Shown: positions 13,164 through 34,558, counted from the first letter of the stretch. The stretch: DNA of 64,000 bases from Octopus sinensis (GCF_006345805.1 NC_043021.1:23436001-23500000), one strand, 5' to 3'. Translations and numbers: made by a program. Notes: generated from the letters alone by a model not told the origin.

Positions 13164-13275
13164 TTAATGTAAACTCCCTTTGTCATCGTTGAACTGGCCT
13201 TTGATCCATTCTTCTAATTTTTCAGCAGATGTATTTTTGCATTTTGAAGAGATGTCTCTAAGATTGTCCCACATC
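13164..13275 (-). CDS. STC: STC-like exon 4 (terminal)
   Basis: Acceptor ttattttgttacattgcag|; phase 2 entry matches exon 3; supplies the 10th Cys; TAA at 13166-13164. Confidence 0.85.
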
Positions 13276-16200
13276 CTGCAATGTAACAAAATAAATTGGT
13301 GTTTTAATCAAACACACTTACTCAGACAAATTACACTCAGACAAACACACTCGGATAGGCAGAGATCAGACAGACTAACAGACAGACAGACACACACACA
13401 CAGAGTAACAGAGTTTGCTTTTATTGTCTAATGCTAACTCAGTTTGAATCTGGAGGCAAATTCAACTCTGCAAGAGGTGGGAGAATACCAATTCCAGAAG
13501 CAAGAAAAGTCGAAAGCAACTGTAGGGAACTTGCTTTCTATATCGCAACAAATCTCACACTAAGAGAATCAAGTGGATTTGACTGGTGGACTCGTTTTTT
13601 TATCAGAAGAAAGAAGCCACATTTCAGGACTGATTTGATGAGAAACTTGTCAGGGGATTAGACGTGACCTCGTGCCCTTTTGTTTTTGGTTGCCACGATT
13701 TTGTAGCAAGATCGGTGTGCGCTTTAGCTGCAGGAGATTGGTTTGCAATCCAGAGAAATAAAGATAGTCACCAAGAAGATAGACATGGCAGCTGAAAGCA
13801 GCTCAACATGGTTGTAGCTGACAAGAGATCGCTGATGGAAACCTTCAGCAATCAAAAGATAAATCAGTCGCCACTGGCCAACTCCGGAAGAGCGTACAGA
13901 TGAAGAAGCATGTCATTTATGACCCTCAGATACTCGCTGAATACGAAAGGGATTCCCTACATTGACATGACTTTAGCCACCAACAGAAGAGCGTTGAATA
14001 CCTCTAAACAGCTCCTACAAGTTCTGTGTGGAGCATAACCTCGCTGGTGTTTATTTTATCTATAACTCAACCCGTAAACACATACATACATACATACATA
14101 CATACATACATACATACATACATACATGCATACATACATACATACATACATACATGCATACATACATACATGCATACATACATACATACATACATACGTA
14201 CATACATGCATACATGCATAGATACATACATACATACATACATACATACATACATACATACATACATACATACATACATACATACATATATACATACATA
14301 CATGCATACATACATACATACATACATACATACATGCATACATACATACATACATACACACACACACACATACGTACATCAAATCACTATACGTCTCGCC
14401 AACACAAAGTGAAGAAGATGGAAATAATGTTTGACTTTATTGAACTGATCAACCTTCAAAAGAAGCTAAAAAGCTATCAGTGAGAAACTCCAACATCAAT
14501 GAAGGGAAAGTGAGAAAATAATCAAGGAAAAATTTAACCAAAACCAGGCAGTTGTATACAGAGATATGAGAAGAAAAGCAGTAGATGCCATAGAAGCTTC
14601 TTCACTATAAAATATAGATTCCTTCTGGTGAAAATCTGGAGACATGCAGCGTCAATGGCGATGCTCTTGCGACTGCAATTCAAAACCTTCTTCATAGAAA
14701 AGCCTACTTTCTCAATCTGTACCCACAAGTTTCAATGGGGATATTAGCATGCCACACTGGTTAGCTCTAGTAGTGACAAAACTGATCCCTCAAAAGCAGA
14801 ACCACCCGCGTGGCAAAGAATTACTGTCCAATTGCATGTCAGTACTTAATATTGTATAAAGTATATACTGCCAGTTTAAATCTTTTCCTTCAAGACCATT
14901 GTGAAACTAATATCACCTGAGCAGAACAAGTAGCTTGGATGAAGGGAGATTGAGGGTGTGCTGAGCAATTATTAATAAACAAAACTACGGTGTCGGAGGT
15001 GCGGCAGCATAAGAGAAACCTGTTTTCAATGTGGTTGGAAAGCTTCTCTGACTCTGTTCACCACTCATGAGATAGATGCCCTTCAACTCGTTAAAGTTCC
15101 AGAAAGTATATTCAAAGATATGATTCACTTGGAGTTTAATCAGGATAAATATTCTCATGTGCTTATGGAACGAGCGAAAACTTTAAACCAGACCAGCGGC
15201 ATCTCGATCAGTGACTTAACTGTCTCTCCTATATCTGATGCGTAATGTTACAGGTACCTTGGGGTATATGAAAACATATCTAACGATGATAGTGTAATAA
15301 GTAACGCCTCACTAAAGCATGTAACAGATGGATAAGGAAAATATGAACCCCAGAACTCTCTGCATACGTTAAAATAATGAACCACAATGTATTTGCAATA
15401 CCAATATAGTATGCATTTCGGCTATTTGCTTGAATATTTTATGAGATCGGAACCTTTGATCTGAAAGCTTGAAAGATATTGACTAGTACAAAAAGTGCCT
15501 ACATCAACAATGCCGTAGACTGCCTCTACCTAAAAGGAAAACAAGATTAATGTTGACCTAAATAAGACAGGATTGTCGTTCAAAGCAGCAGCAAAAAAAA
15601 ACAAAACAAAAACACTTTAATAAAGCTCAATATCCATAGAAATATGGAGAAAATATTCCTTTAGCTATAGGCACTAGGACTGAAAAAGGAGCTGGGAAAA
15701 TATTGCAGAGAAAAAATACTTCCTCCACTACAAATATCATGCTTTAAGTGGTTACATAGTTTTATCTTGGTTGATTGGTTATTTGCTTGCTTGGTAGATA
15801 TAGACTTATCATGCCGTTGTTATCGTAATATTCAAAGGTGGTGCTTTGAGAGGTTAGCAGGGAATTTTACATGTAACAGCAAAGAATATCCCTCAATGGT
15901 TCGTCACACCACGATGGAATGGGTAGTAAATGCATGTTATTCAGCTACACACAGACATCTTCAATATTTTACTTGTTACTGTTTTGGAAGGTGGCGAGCT
16001 GGCAGAAACGGTAGCACGCCGGGCGAAATGCGTAGCCGTATTTCGTCTGCCGTTACGTTCTGAGTTCAAATTCCGCCGAGGTTGACTTTGCCTTTCATCC
16101 TTTCGGGGTCGATAAATTAAGTACCAGTTACGGACTGGAGTCGATGGAATCGACTTAATCCCTTTGTCTGCCCTTGTTTGTCCCCTCTATGTTTAGCCCC

Positions 16201-34200: not shown

Positions 34201-34558
34201 CTCTCTGTTTATTTCCTTGCGTTCTTTTCTGTTGAAGAACATATGCTCGAAACATAAAAGAGTTTCTGACTTTCCTGTGCGTCAAACTAAGACACTTGCT
34301 TGTTGTTTCTACACCTATCTTCGTCTTTTGTTTTTCTGTAAATTTCAATTATATATATGCATATATCCATGTAAATGTATATATGTGTGTGTGTGTGCCT
34401 ATATATATATATATATATATATATATATACGGTCATACTGCAATACACTAACCTGCTTGGGGTTTTTCCTCTGCTTCCCAATCGAGTTCAGTCCGAAAAT
34501 AAAATCCTTGACAGGTTAATGCCCATTGCAGTAAAATAATTGAGAAAAGCTTCAACAT
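13164..34558 (-). CDS. STC: Stanniocalcin-like secreted protein, 4 exons: join(34558-34453, 20862-20705, 17008-16782, 13275-13164), 200 aa
   Basis: Manual splicing at GT-AG sites gives one open frame: [200 protein letters not shown]. It has a signal-peptide-like N-terminus and 10 Cys after it, spaced x8,x4,x6,x12,x23,x15,x13,x6,x39. Human STC1, as recalled, is x8,x4,x5,x8,x23,x15,x13,x6,x34. Intron phases are 1,0,2. Confidence 0.85.
13430..15545 (+). mobile_element. Degraded R4/Dong-like (RLE-type) non-LTR RT relic, interrupted by (CATA)n 14078-14375
   Basis: Translated fragments [39 protein letters not shown] typical of this RT group; many stops. Confidence 0.7.
15990..16220 (+). mobile_element. 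tRNA-derived SINE, family 1 (Tx1-like 3' tail)
   Basis: ggcgagctggcagaaac..gagttcaaattcc A/B-box-like head. Other copies, all minus: 17630-17782, 20105-20455 (nested), 41303-41496. Confidence 0.85.
16782..17008 (-). CDS. STC: STC-like exon 3
   Basis: Acceptor ctgtctaatattcacag|, donor AT|GTAAGT; 227 nt, phase 0 to 2; encodes [12 protein letters not shown]...[12 protein letters not shown]...HYYK. Confidence 0.9.
18440..18655 (+). mobile_element. 3' end of an R4/Dong-like LINE
   Basis: Encodes [16 protein letters not shown] (RLE C-terminus) followed by a UTR and an aataataac tail. Confidence 0.7.
18704..18749 (+). ncRNA. Minimal type-I hammerhead ribozyme-like motif (Penelope-type)
   Basis: GACAC-CUGAUGA-A-GGCUG(10 nt loop)CAGCC-GAAA-CG-UU/GUGUU: stem I GACAC/GUGUU, stem II 5 bp, palindromic ACGU stem III. 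Confidence 0.65.
19310..19830 (+). mobile_element. Non-autonomous retroposon with (AAT)n tail; inverted partial copy at 17973-18175
   Basis: 19630-19820 is the reverse complement of 17973-18165; both end in AAT repeats. Confidence 0.65.
20105..20455 (-). mobile_element. Nested copies of SINE family 1
   Basis: A complete copy (20250-20455) has its tail joined to the gtatttcgtctgccg segment of another copy; a further fragment lies at 20105-20160. Confidence 0.8.
20705..20862 (-). CDS. STC: STC-like exon 2
   Basis: Acceptor tttttcttttctccatttttcag|, donor GTG|GTAGGT; 158 nt, phase 1 to 0; encodes [23 protein letters not shown]...HC. Confidence 0.9.
20955..21655 (+). mobile_element. Tc1/mariner-superfamily relic
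   Basis: Frameshifted ..[22 protein letters not shown], ..[14 protein letters not shown]. The left end 20975-21079 is repeated at 24611-24716. Confidence 0.7.
23065..23388 (+). mobile_element. mariner 5' fragment
   Basis: [40 protein letters not shown], a mariner N-terminal HTH. Confidence 0.8.
25405..25648 (-). other. Possible cassette or decayed exon in STC intron 1 carrying an RKKR|S motif
   Basis: Acceptor ttttaatttcacgcag| and donor CGG|GTAATA. It is 244 nt, one more than a symmetric phase-1 exon. The downstream frame reads [37 protein letters not shown]... Confidence 0.35.
26351..26484. repeat. 55-bp inverted repeat, 1 mismatch, 24-nt spacer
   Basis: 26351-26405 is the reverse complement of 26430-26484. 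Confidence 0.95.
26857..27472. repeat. Foldback element of about 615 bp with nested inverted arms and a hammerhead relic
   Basis: 26857-26899 pairs with 27430-27472 (2 mismatches); about 26922-27110 pairs with about 27235-27408. Confidence 0.85.
27533..27958 (+). mobile_element. tRNA-derived SINE, family 2 (CORE-like cttgggcaagtgtctt segment), full length
   Basis: Head ggcgcaggagtggctgtgtggtaag..ccgggttcagtccc. Other copies: 16230-16592(-), 22085-22510(+), 22858-23060(-), 23562-23705(-), 30615-30905(-), 37817-38243(-), 39532-39780(-), 40630-40775(-). Confidence 0.88.
28000..28830. mobile_element. Penelope-type non-autonomous repeat cluster with hammerhead-like motifs
   Basis: Repeat 28000-28170 recurs at 34170-34340(rc), 47025-47116 and 63925-64000. 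Inverted repeat 28209-28270/28350-28410; direct repeat 28268-28335/28752-28815; motif CTGACGA..GAAA at 28610-28653. Confidence 0.6.
29669..30200 (+). pseudogene. ORF1 relic of a more distant Tx1/L1 family (5' part only)
   Basis: [44 protein letters not shown] aligns with the central ORF1 domain of copies B, D and E; 2 stops. Confidence 0.7.
31914..33744 (-). mobile_element. Non-autonomous composite Helitron with Pif1-type helicase fragment
   Basis: A|TC...hairpin cccg-agcaacgc-cggg...CTAG|T termini. ORF 31990-32511 reads [30 protein letters not shown]...CNGTRL. Confidence 0.85.
32761..33270. repeat. Tandem repeat of about 167 bp x3 inside the Helitron
   Basis: Units begin ttttcgtcctaaaaaactttg near 32761, 32926 and 33093, with a partial unit near 33254. 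Confidence 0.92.
34453..34558 (-). CDS. STC: STC-like exon 1 (signal peptide)
   Basis: ATG at 34558; hydrophobic [18 protein letters not shown]; donor CAG|GTTAGT, phase 1. The first 72 coding nt are identical in the paralog at 47117-47188. Confidence 0.8.

Follow-up and report, generated by a model that had tools for sequence, protein, structure and literature searches.

A stanniocalcin-family gene in an octopod-specific tandem array of Octopus sinensis

Introduction

Four small exons spread over 21 kb of octopus DNA can be spliced into a protein resembling stanniocalcin (STC). Is such a gene the octopus's own version of the vertebrate hormone, or a descendant of the hormone gene that serves another purpose? 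The question is raised by a locus within a 64,000-nt stretch of Octopus sinensis DNA (the window; all positions are counted from its first letter), where the original prediction, made from the sequence, had placed a hidden invertebrate STC-like gene. Here we examine the gene model, its family, its relatives in the genome and the divergence among its copies, and weigh the possible roles of the product.

Gene structure

The window carries an intact four-exon gene on the minus strand at 13164-34558, and all its introns are of the GT-AG type. The start ATG is at 34558 and the stop TAA at 13166-13164, and the spliced coding sequence of 603 nt is translated into a 200-aa protein. The features are as follows.

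34453..34558, minus strand: exon 1, 106 nt; ATG, hydrophobic putative signal peptide and a short stretch before Cys1; ends in phase 1
20863..34452, minus strand: intron 1, 13,590 nt, phase 1; microsatellite-rich
31990-32541: Pif1-helicase (Helitron-like) fragment inside intron 1
20705..20862, minus strand: exon 2, 158 nt; Cys1 to Cys5 as C-x8-C-x4-C-x6-C-x12-C
17009..20704, minus strand: intron 2, 3,696 nt, phase 0; at the position between Q and GKAF of vertebrate STC1
16782..17008, minus strand: exon 3, 227 nt; begins with GNIW; Cys6 to Cys9 as C-x15-C-x13-C-x6-C; ends in phase 2
13276..16781, minus strand: intron 3, 3,506 nt, phase 2; 12 codons ahead of Cys10, as in vertebrate STC1
13164..13275, minus strand: coding part of exon 4, 112 nt; Cys10, N178-T-S sequon, C-terminal helix and TAA
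13025..13030, minus strand: AATAAA, candidate polyadenylation signal 133 nt past the stop, a pattern match only
47114..47188, minus strand: orphan exon-1 copy covering codons 1-25, without downstream exons

The donors are gttagt, gtaggt and gtaagt and the acceptors ttttcag, tcacag and ttgcag; neither the reading frame nor the stop codon is disrupted, and 6/6 splice sites are intact. The four exons, the 200-aa product, the phases 1, 0 and 2 and the coordinates given by the original prediction are all present on the minus strand, and its Cys spacing (8, 4, 6, 12, 23, 15, 13, 6, 39) and the placing of intron 2 directly before GNIW were reproduced. The gene is not a chance arrangement, since its product matches a Pfam profile with an E-value of 4.8e-9 and every exon recurs several times among the paralogs with unchanged boundaries.

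Some other observations were made in the window. The orphan exon-1 copy sits in a 1.1-kb duplicate (47115-48310, 79% nucleotide identity) of the gene's 5' region. A second full paralog at 35-47 kb was considered and rejected, as the truncated exon-1 copy alone is present there. Near the gene, (TA)n microsatellites swamp the TATA-box pattern and no TATA box was assigned. A scan of the whole window against Rfam gave no RNA family reaching the gathering score.

Family assignment and protein features

The Pfam match is to the Stanniocalcin profile PF03298, at 36.3 bits compared with a cut-off of 23, and residues 38-199 are aligned to profile positions 36-187 of 200. In a PDB sequence search with the protein, STC2 chains were the only matches. 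The AlphaFold model (AF2) is all-helical, with a pLDDT of 87.1 and a pTM of 0.77, and its best four Foldseek matches in the PDB were all STC2 in PAPP-A complexes (probability 1.00, TM 0.53-0.61); the matches after the STC2 chains all had E > 1. The profile score thus lies above the cut-off and the predicted fold matches STC2 with confidence and nothing else, which bears out the family proposed at the outset. A domain search found no immune or reproductive domain in the protein. Judged from the profile match and the predicted model, the window gene encodes a stanniocalcin-family protein of a putatively secreted type.

The N-terminal 18 residues are hydrophobic, carry a small -1/-3 motif (C-Q-G) and are modelled as a helix, with a putative cleavage site after them. 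Ten Cys follow this signal region with the spacing given above, enough for five intrachain disulfides with no spare Cys in the mature protein; the eleventh, C16, lies within the predicted signal peptide. The ten align with those of mammalian and fish STC1 and of three other mollusc homologs, and among 57 family members 5/10 are invariant while the other five are kept in at least 90% of the sequences. There is no Cys after Cys10 that could form an interchain dimer, and the vertebrate C-terminal region bearing that Cys is also missing. The N-S-T sequon after Cys3 is absent (CLNQRFPC is found there), and the sequons of the protein are elsewhere, at N69-K-S and N178-T-S. Both absences had been foreseen, and both were confirmed in the sequence and alignment. 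They are not peculiar to this gene, because invertebrate STC homologs in general show the same (PMC5654410; our alignment). The protein is most likely monomeric, or at least without a disulfide dimer.

Comparison with vertebrate and invertebrate homologs

The window protein shares with vertebrate STC1 and STC2 the HMM match, ten Cys in register, an all-helical fold and an N-terminal signal (predicted here), but is only about 16-20% identical to them. Its Cys4-Cys5 loop has 12 residues compared with 8 in the vertebrate proteins, and Cys3-Cys4 has 6 compared with 5. The eleventh Cys, the C-terminal extension and the NST sequon set the vertebrate proteins apart as well, and C120 of STC2, which bonds PAPP-A, has no equivalent in the alignment.

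The gene structures are much closer than the proteins: both are made of four coding exons, and the three introns agree in position and phase. The STC1 gene of a fish (Astyanax) was solved exactly and that of a mammal (Nannospalax) was also solved, the latter as far as exons 1-3 and the beginning of exon 4 and with mismatches allowed, because exon 4 is not translated exactly in that assembly; both have intron phases 1, 0 and 2. We take the Nannospalax protein to be 97% identical to human STC1. The three introns common to the octopus, Astyanax and Nannospalax genes fall at alignment columns 39, 96 and 172 with the same phases, so the description "vertebrate-type exon structure" holds exactly. 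From these shared positions and phases, the window gene comes down from the STC gene of the bilaterian ancestor and did not arise by convergence as a look-alike.

With invertebrate STC homologs (Roch & Sherwood 2011, PMC5654410; chiton, limpet, Argonauta; and an O. sinensis gene at C9:61.92 Mb), the window protein has in common the ten-Cys framework, a length of about 200 aa, the lack of an eleventh Cys and the motif DC-x-FY-x-C-x-E-R-x-PCG. On the other hand, the proteins of other molluscs are just 21-33% identical to it, it lacks the G-x-Y-x4-G-x2-Y-C loop conserved in invertebrate homologs of the general type, and the gene belongs to a derived, expanded clade found only in octopods.

Genomic copies and phylogeny

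Across the O. sinensis genome, 39 exon matches were found. At least 14 copies of exon 3 lie on C25, a 28.9-Mb scaffold, between about 23.40 and 24.02 Mb (about 620 kb), and further exon copies are on C9781, C2819 and C9, small scaffolds being among those that carry them. The array was read over 264 kb, and copies past 23.66 Mb were seen only as 3-kb loci around exon matches. The exon-3 boundaries and Cys pattern are kept in 15/15 genomic copies. Five full paralogs (A-E) were reconstructed with identical structure, the window gene being copy B. Its near-twin, copy A, is 48 kb away and corresponds to one long duplicated block in the window.

8690..31913: 23.4-kb block, 98.5% identical to G000:C25:23398000-23421269, the body of copy A

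Copy A is RefSeq LOC118767948 (XP_036369325.1), annotated "uncharacterized". In copy C, an exon 3-4 pair is present twice, 100% identical and 14.4 kb apart. As far as we found, the array is annotated merely as "uncharacterized protein" or left unannotated. The exact window protein is absent from a collection of 15 billion proteins, transcript assemblies included. The word "hidden" in the original prediction is therefore right for the exact protein, but its near-twin XP_036369325.1 is in RefSeq, and octopod STC-like venom-gland proteins were already named in a 2026 preprint.

In the tree, the window gene falls in a clade of 14 rows with 97% support (SH-aLRT), and the other 13 are all octopod, relatives from O. 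bimaculoides among them. A search of the literature by O. bimaculoides accession turned up no paper. The more conservative cephalopod type, represented in O. sinensis by the gene on the other scaffold C9, is sister to this octopod-only clade, while vertebrate STC1 forms a separate long branch. No one-to-one orthology with vertebrate STC1 or STC2 appears in the tree, as the window gene is nested among the octopod sequences. In O. vulgaris, CAI9741003.1 and CAI9741004.1 are neighbouring but separate genes. The first is the ortholog of the window gene, and since it differs at just 3/165 residues (98% identical), the window copy has been maintained.

As copy B of a tandem array specific to octopods, the window gene is not a single ancient ortholog. 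Of the earlier reading "ancient ortholog or paralog", descent from STC stands; a lone ortholog does not, given an octopod-specific array of at least 14 copies and its fast mature exons.

Divergence among paralogs

When the paralogs A-E are compared, exon 1 is 94-100% identical at the nucleotide level, and the 300 nt of intron directly upstream of exon 2 are 97-100% identical, which could be partly due to gene conversion instead of slow intron evolution. Exon 2 and exon 3 are only 79-84% and 78-83% identical, respectively. Within exon 2, the N-terminal half is invariant; the hypervariable parts are the Cys4-Cys5 loop and the tail. Between copies A and B, exon 2 has 10 differences, all nonsynonymous, and the flanking introns are about 99-100% identical; between copies B and E, the contrast of exon and intron divergence gives a Fisher p of 1.7e-16. 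The mature exons of the array evolve far faster than its introns. Omega is 2.16 for exon 2 (6 paralogs), about 1.1 for exon 3 (9 paralogs) and 1.51 for both combined, with pairwise dN/dS of 0.8-1.45 among paralogs; values near 1, taken alone, could also reflect relaxed constraint.

Discussion

We first consider whether the window gene acts in the octopus as STC does in vertebrates, that is, as an endogenous hormone or paracrine factor for its own ion transport or growth signalling. Such a role would suit the family, fold, Cys framework and intron positions, in all of which the gene agrees with vertebrate STC1, as well as the wide occurrence of STC homologs among invertebrates (PMC5654410) and the near-identity of the O. 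vulgaris ortholog. Vertebrate STCs, however, are one or two conserved genes, while the octopus genes are multi-copy and fast-evolving. A conserved hormone does not behave in this way: the genes number at least 14 in tandem, omega in their mature exons is about 1-2, and their exons diverge much faster than their introns. It also belongs to the octopod-only clade, while the more conservative cephalopod gene on C9 exists beside it. An exon-by-exon search of the genome for the catalytic domain of pappalysins (PF05572) gave no match, a negative of little weight. We regard the hormone role as unlikely.

Tandem expansion, a conserved signal and diversifying mature exons are typical of immune and reproductive families too, so the gene might serve another fast-evolving secreted function, such as immune or antimicrobial defence, reproduction (egg or sperm coat, seminal) or chemosensory or sucker secretion. 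The absence of any immune or reproductive domain speaks against this, as does the sole published tissue evidence for octopod STC-like proteins, which are highly expressed products of the posterior salivary gland; we hold these roles to be distinctly unlikely. It is far more improbable that the gene is a silent recent duplicate or an assembly artefact, in particular an uncollapsed haplotype of LOC118767948. The identity of the 23.4-kb block to copy A is near allelic divergence, the window protein is in no annotation, and the repeated exon pair of copy C is also of this kind, and part of this near-identical duplication could indeed be artefactual. A pure haplotype artefact is nevertheless considered unlikely for the A/B pair, in view of the exon 2 differences between nearly identical introns and the two neighbouring O. 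vulgaris genes, one of them almost identical to the window copy. The duplicated units also stand in tandem with different flanks, and the frame, splice sites and stop codon of the window gene are intact.

A salivary or venom role is the best reading because of the recent preprint on octopod venom glands. According to this preprint, the stanniocalcin "doppelganger toxins" of superfamily SF5 rank among the secreted products most highly expressed in the posterior salivary (venom) glands of octopods, and their predicted structure overlays STC2 (Koch et al. 2026, bioRxiv 10.64898/2026.02.02.703354). The species it names are O. bimaculoides and H. maculosa, O. sinensis not being among them, and its treatment of SF5 includes no genomic analysis. 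The window gene product and SF5 are alike in being octopod STC-like proteins of a secreted type with a predicted STC2-like structure, a likeness drawn from the description of SF5. The conserved signal, diversifying mature region and gene multiplication of the array are supportive but not defining.

Cone-snail conotoxins and snake-venom PLA2 are toxin families with accelerated evolution, in which the signal and introns are conserved and the mature exons hypervariable. In the octopus array, too, the signal exon and flanking introns hardly vary, the Cys scaffold is fixed, omega in the mature region is at least 1 and the genes are multiplied in tandem, but fold and origin are unrelated, and venom delivery of the octopus protein is putative. 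The pattern of a signal and scaffold held constant while the surface diversifies would be typical of exocrine toxin families. By analogy with these families and with SF5, the window gene most likely encodes a secreted salivary or venom protein, and is probably not the octopus's own calcium or growth hormone. The protein would then act outside the octopus, on STC-responsive targets of the prey, with a pappalysin-type protease or a receptor as candidates. Against this stands that invertebrate STC homologs are not known to have a demonstrated activity and that their interaction with invertebrate pappalysin is considered unlikely (PMC11925022).

More tentatively, an endogenous STC gene may have been duplicated into a venom array of at least 14 genes in tandem. 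Its products would be injected as STC mimics, which might block prey pappalysin proteases or hijack the STC receptor. Gene conversion would keep the signal exon and introns uniform, while selection would push the receptor-facing loops apart, chiefly the Cys4-Cys5 loop in exon 2.

The STC family was already known, as were its members in invertebrates and in octopod venom glands, and as a stand-alone gene find the present one is modest. The array itself, the conservation of its introns and the pattern of exons evolving faster than introns come from our analysis and not from the SF5 preprint. Introns better conserved than exons are a clear genomic sign of diversifying selection, and the array gives venom biologists a defined candidate venom locus. 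If the array was indeed recruited into venom, the octopod proteins would be natural probes for the long-sought receptor or target of stanniocalcin, and such naturally diversified STC mimics may help in finding the receptor and the targets other than pappalysins. The exact match of introns between octopus and vertebrates makes the STC gene structure older than the protostome-deuterostome split, and the octopod STC-like proteins true descendants of a hormone gene instead of de novo look-alikes, which bears on the origin of the "doppelganger" toxins.

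Gene structure and family assignment

The gene in the window is copy B of a tandem array of stanniocalcin (STC)-family paralogs on scaffold C25 of the Octopus sinensis genome (G000), where the window spans G000:C25:23436001-23500000. Exon 3 was located with the peptide GNIW, which has a single match in the six-frame search of the window (minus strand, 17008), and exon 2 was located at about 20848 by its cysteine spacing pattern. The assembled gene consists of four exons.

Exons of the window gene
34558-34453, minus strand: exon 1, 106 nt
20862-20705, minus strand: exon 2, 158 nt
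17008-16782, minus strand: exon 3, 227 nt
13275-13164, minus strand: exon 4, 112 nt

All three introns (13,590, 3,696 and 3,506 nt) have GT-AG borders, with phases 1, 0 and 2. The coding sequence of 603 nt gives a protein of 200 aa, in which a hydrophobic N-terminus is followed by ten cysteines with spacings 8, 4, 6, 12, 23, 15, 13, 6 and 39, and AATAAA lies 133 nt 3' of the stop codon. The original prediction had reported these coordinates, phases and spacings, as well as NQR in place of the NST sequon, and all of them were correct when the four exons were read and assembled. The signal peptide would be cleaved, and the mature protein is expected to have five intrachain disulfides without a covalent dimer. 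Residue 16, within the signal peptide (codon 34513-34511), is Cys in copies A and B but Ser in paralogs C-E and in the O. vulgaris proteins; were cleavage not to occur at the expected site, Cys16 would remain as an unpaired eleventh cysteine.

Membership in the stanniocalcin family, as predicted, is confirmed by the Pfam profile PF03298, which matches residues 38-199 with 36.3 bits (E 4.8e-9) against a cut-off of 23 bits. Sequence comparison with the PDB finds STC2 chains and no other relatives; in this alignment, a Pro of the window protein stands opposite STC2 C120. An AlphaFold2 model built from a 57-sequence alignment is all-helical (pLDDT 87.1, pTM 0.77). The comparison of a predicted structure with STC1/STC2, proposed as a check, also agrees: the best four Foldseek matches of the model in the PDB are all STC2 in PAPP-A complexes (8a7e, 8hgh, 8a7d and 7y5q; probability 1.00, TM 0.53-0.61), and all remaining matches have E > 1.

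Intron positions compared with vertebrate STC1

For the vertebrate genes, a human STC1 sequence was used as the query, and it returned mammalian STC1s with 97% identity. The exon boundaries of STC1 in Astyanax mexicanus (fish) and Nannospalax galili (mammal) were solved so that the spliced translation equals the protein.

Intron positions in the window gene and in vertebrate STC1
Intron 1, phase 1: octopus codon A36, mammal codon A40, fish codon S39; five residues 5' of Cys1
Intron 2, phase 0: octopus V88/G89, mammal Q87/G88, fish Q86/G87; ten residues 5' of Cys6
Intron 3, phase 2: octopus codon M164, mammal codon R158, fish codon R157; twelve residues 5' of Cys10

In the joint alignment, the octopus and STC1 introns share columns 39, 96 and 172, and 10 of 10 cysteines are aligned. 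The exon structure is thus of the vertebrate type, as had been proposed, and since columns and phases are the same, this structure goes back to the common ancestor of protostomes and deuterostomes. The eleventh (dimerising) cysteine and the C-terminal tail, in contrast, are confined to the vertebrate sequences of the alignment, so that the window gene does lack the former; both are likewise absent from invertebrate STC homologs (PMC5654410).

A lineage-specific tandem array

The window protein gave 39 exon-sized matches in the O. sinensis genome. Of these, 14 are copies of exon 3 that lie at 23.40-23.98 Mb of C25; matches to exons of the array extend to 24.02 Mb, and others lie on scaffolds C9781, C2819 and C9. 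The STC signal of a genome-wide Pfam search is confined to the array. From 264 kb of the array that were read, five paralogs (A-E) were rebuilt, which lie on both strands and all have the identical four-exon structure. The acceptor, the donor and C-x15-C-x13-C-x6-C are kept in 15 of 15 readable exon-3 copies.

A tree of 88 family members places the window gene in a 14-row clade (SH-aLRT 97) whose 13 other rows are all octopod (O. sinensis, O. vulgaris, O. bimaculoides and Argonauta). The sister of this clade, a more conservative cephalopod type, has an O. sinensis copy at C9:61.92 Mb. The STC homologs of chiton, limpet and whelk are only 21-24% identical to the window protein. A single ancient ortholog, one form of the earlier claim, is not borne out: given an array of at least 14 copies and an octopod-only clade, the window gene belongs to a lineage-specific expansion and is young.

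Paralog C has two copies of its exons 3 and 4, spaced 14.4 kb apart (G000:C25:23505656-23508987 and 23520035-23523355; loci L036-L038), which agree fully in translation and in flanking sequence; they reflect either a partial duplication in the very recent past or an artefact of the assembly. Three Branchiostoma floridae proteins (P0012, P0013 and P0015; 466-699 aa) each have two tandem STC-like domains and additional Cys-rich modules, and one of them has an N-terminal phospholipase-A2-like region too. This multidomain setting of the STC fold in amphioxus looks unusual.

The exact 200-aa window protein is absent from a collection of 15 billion proteins, and the gene is apparently unannotated. 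Copy A, 46.7-48 kb away, is RefSeq XP_036369325.1 ("uncharacterized protein LOC118767948"); it lacks a stop codon at the corresponding position, and its RefSeq model has a longer tail. The RefSeq model of copy E (LOC118767949, P0003, 164 aa; G000:C25:23610517-23629544, loci L047-L048) does not extend beyond exon 3 and looks truncated, since a good in-frame exon 4, complete with Cys10 and stop codon, lies about 6.2 kb downstream.

Divergence of exons and introns

Nucleotide identity among copies B-E (ranges omit the closest pair, D-E, with exon 2 97% and exon 3 90%)
Exon 1 (signal): 94-99%
300 nt of intron 5' of exon 2: 97-100%
Introns adjoining exon 3, where unbroken by microsatellites: 86-99%
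Exon 2: 79-84%
Exon 3: 78-83%

The intron-exon contrast between copies B and E has a Fisher p of 1.7e-16. Nei-Gojobori dN/dS values of the mature region are 0.8-1.45, with exon 2 higher. Under a codon model, six copies of exon 2 give an omega of 2.16 and nine copies of exon 3 one of about 1.1, and the two exons combined give 1.51. Most of the variation falls in the loop between Cys4 and Cys5 and in the residues that follow Cys5, while the N-terminal half of exon 2 and every cysteine are fixed. Because exons diverge faster than introns, relaxed constraint alone is insufficient as an explanation. In our reading, the mature protein is under diversifying selection, and the non-coding parts have probably undergone gene conversion.

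The neighbouring copies A and B were compared over a 23.4-kb tandem block (window 8690-31913 against G000:C25:23398000-23421269, which carries copy A) with 98.5% identity. The two copies agree completely in exons 1, 3 and 4 but not in exon 2, where 10 nt differ and every change is nonsynonymous; the introns flanking exon 2 are about 99-100% identical. The O. vulgaris ortholog of the window copy, CAI9741003.1, differs at 3 of 165 residues, and part of exon 2 of copy A (P-V-A) is the same as in the O. vulgaris positional ortholog. This last agreement points to homogenisation of the A/B block in which the diversity of exon 2 would have been retained or re-imported.

Surroundings of the gene

Other features of the window
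1614-6790, minus strand: LINE-type retrotransposon
7614-10118, minus strand: LINE-type retrotransposon
48949-53375, minus strand: LINE-type retrotransposon
55039-58668, minus strand: LINE-type retrotransposon
31990-32541, minus strand: Pif1 helicase 2B domain (E 3e-15) in a 183-aa open frame, within intron 1
47114-48310, minus strand: orphan duplicate of the 5' flank of the gene (79% nt identity over 1.1 kb) and its first 25 codons (100% aa identity)

The four LINE-type copies (Exo_endo_phos endonuclease, RVT_1 and zf-RVT), some of them truncated or frame-broken, are the GC-rich blocks of the window and flank the gene. The Pif1 domain is probably a fragment of a Helitron-type transposon. Similarity in the orphan duplicate ends after codon 25, and the 11.5 kb that separate it from the real exon 1 contain no exons 2-4; GTAATA in phase 1 is present 22 nt past the break, and use as an alternative first exon is possible. 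An element of ~100 nt at 36218-36316 (plus strand) recurs at seven more sites in 23.50-23.65 Mb near array members. It translates as 'MREL*YWLL..SGEITHLPSPPPKLPD' and contains stops in O. sinensis; a relative in O. bimaculoides has been annotated as exon 1 of A0A0L8GL32 (P0004), an STC-like protein. The element could serve as an alternative 5' exon, or it could be a splice-site-capturing repeat.

Possible function

The only paper found in a literature search for stanniocalcin and octopus is a preprint of February 2026 (bioRxiv 10.64898/2026.02.02.703354), which reports that stanniocalcin-mimicking "doppelganger toxins" (superfamily SF5) belong to the secreted products expressed at high levels in the posterior salivary glands of octopods, and which contains no genomic analysis of SF5. 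Combined with the toxin-like evolutionary pattern of the array, this report best supports a role of the window gene product as a secreted protein of saliva or venom, which we consider rather probable. The gene itself, its family, fold and intron homology, and the array with its pattern of divergence are shown by the data, whereas where the gene is expressed, and what its protein acts on, we infer.

An endogenous hormone seems unlikely to us. An exon-by-exon Pfam search of the whole genome, which is weak for split genes, found no Peptidase_M43 (the pappalysin catalytic domain) at E <= 0.001; if this absence is real, the octopus is without the sole known target class of STC. Some other fast-evolving secreted role is a little less likely still. 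The stop codon of the window copy is intact, and a silent copy or an artefact appears very improbable. Compared with these, the salivary or venom reading is preferred.

The literature has contained invertebrate STC homologs since 2011, and the 2026 preprint added STC-like proteins from octopod venom glands. What is new here is the demonstration of intron-for-intron homology with vertebrate STC1, together with a tandem array of at least 14 copies in which the divergence of exons outpaces that of introns.
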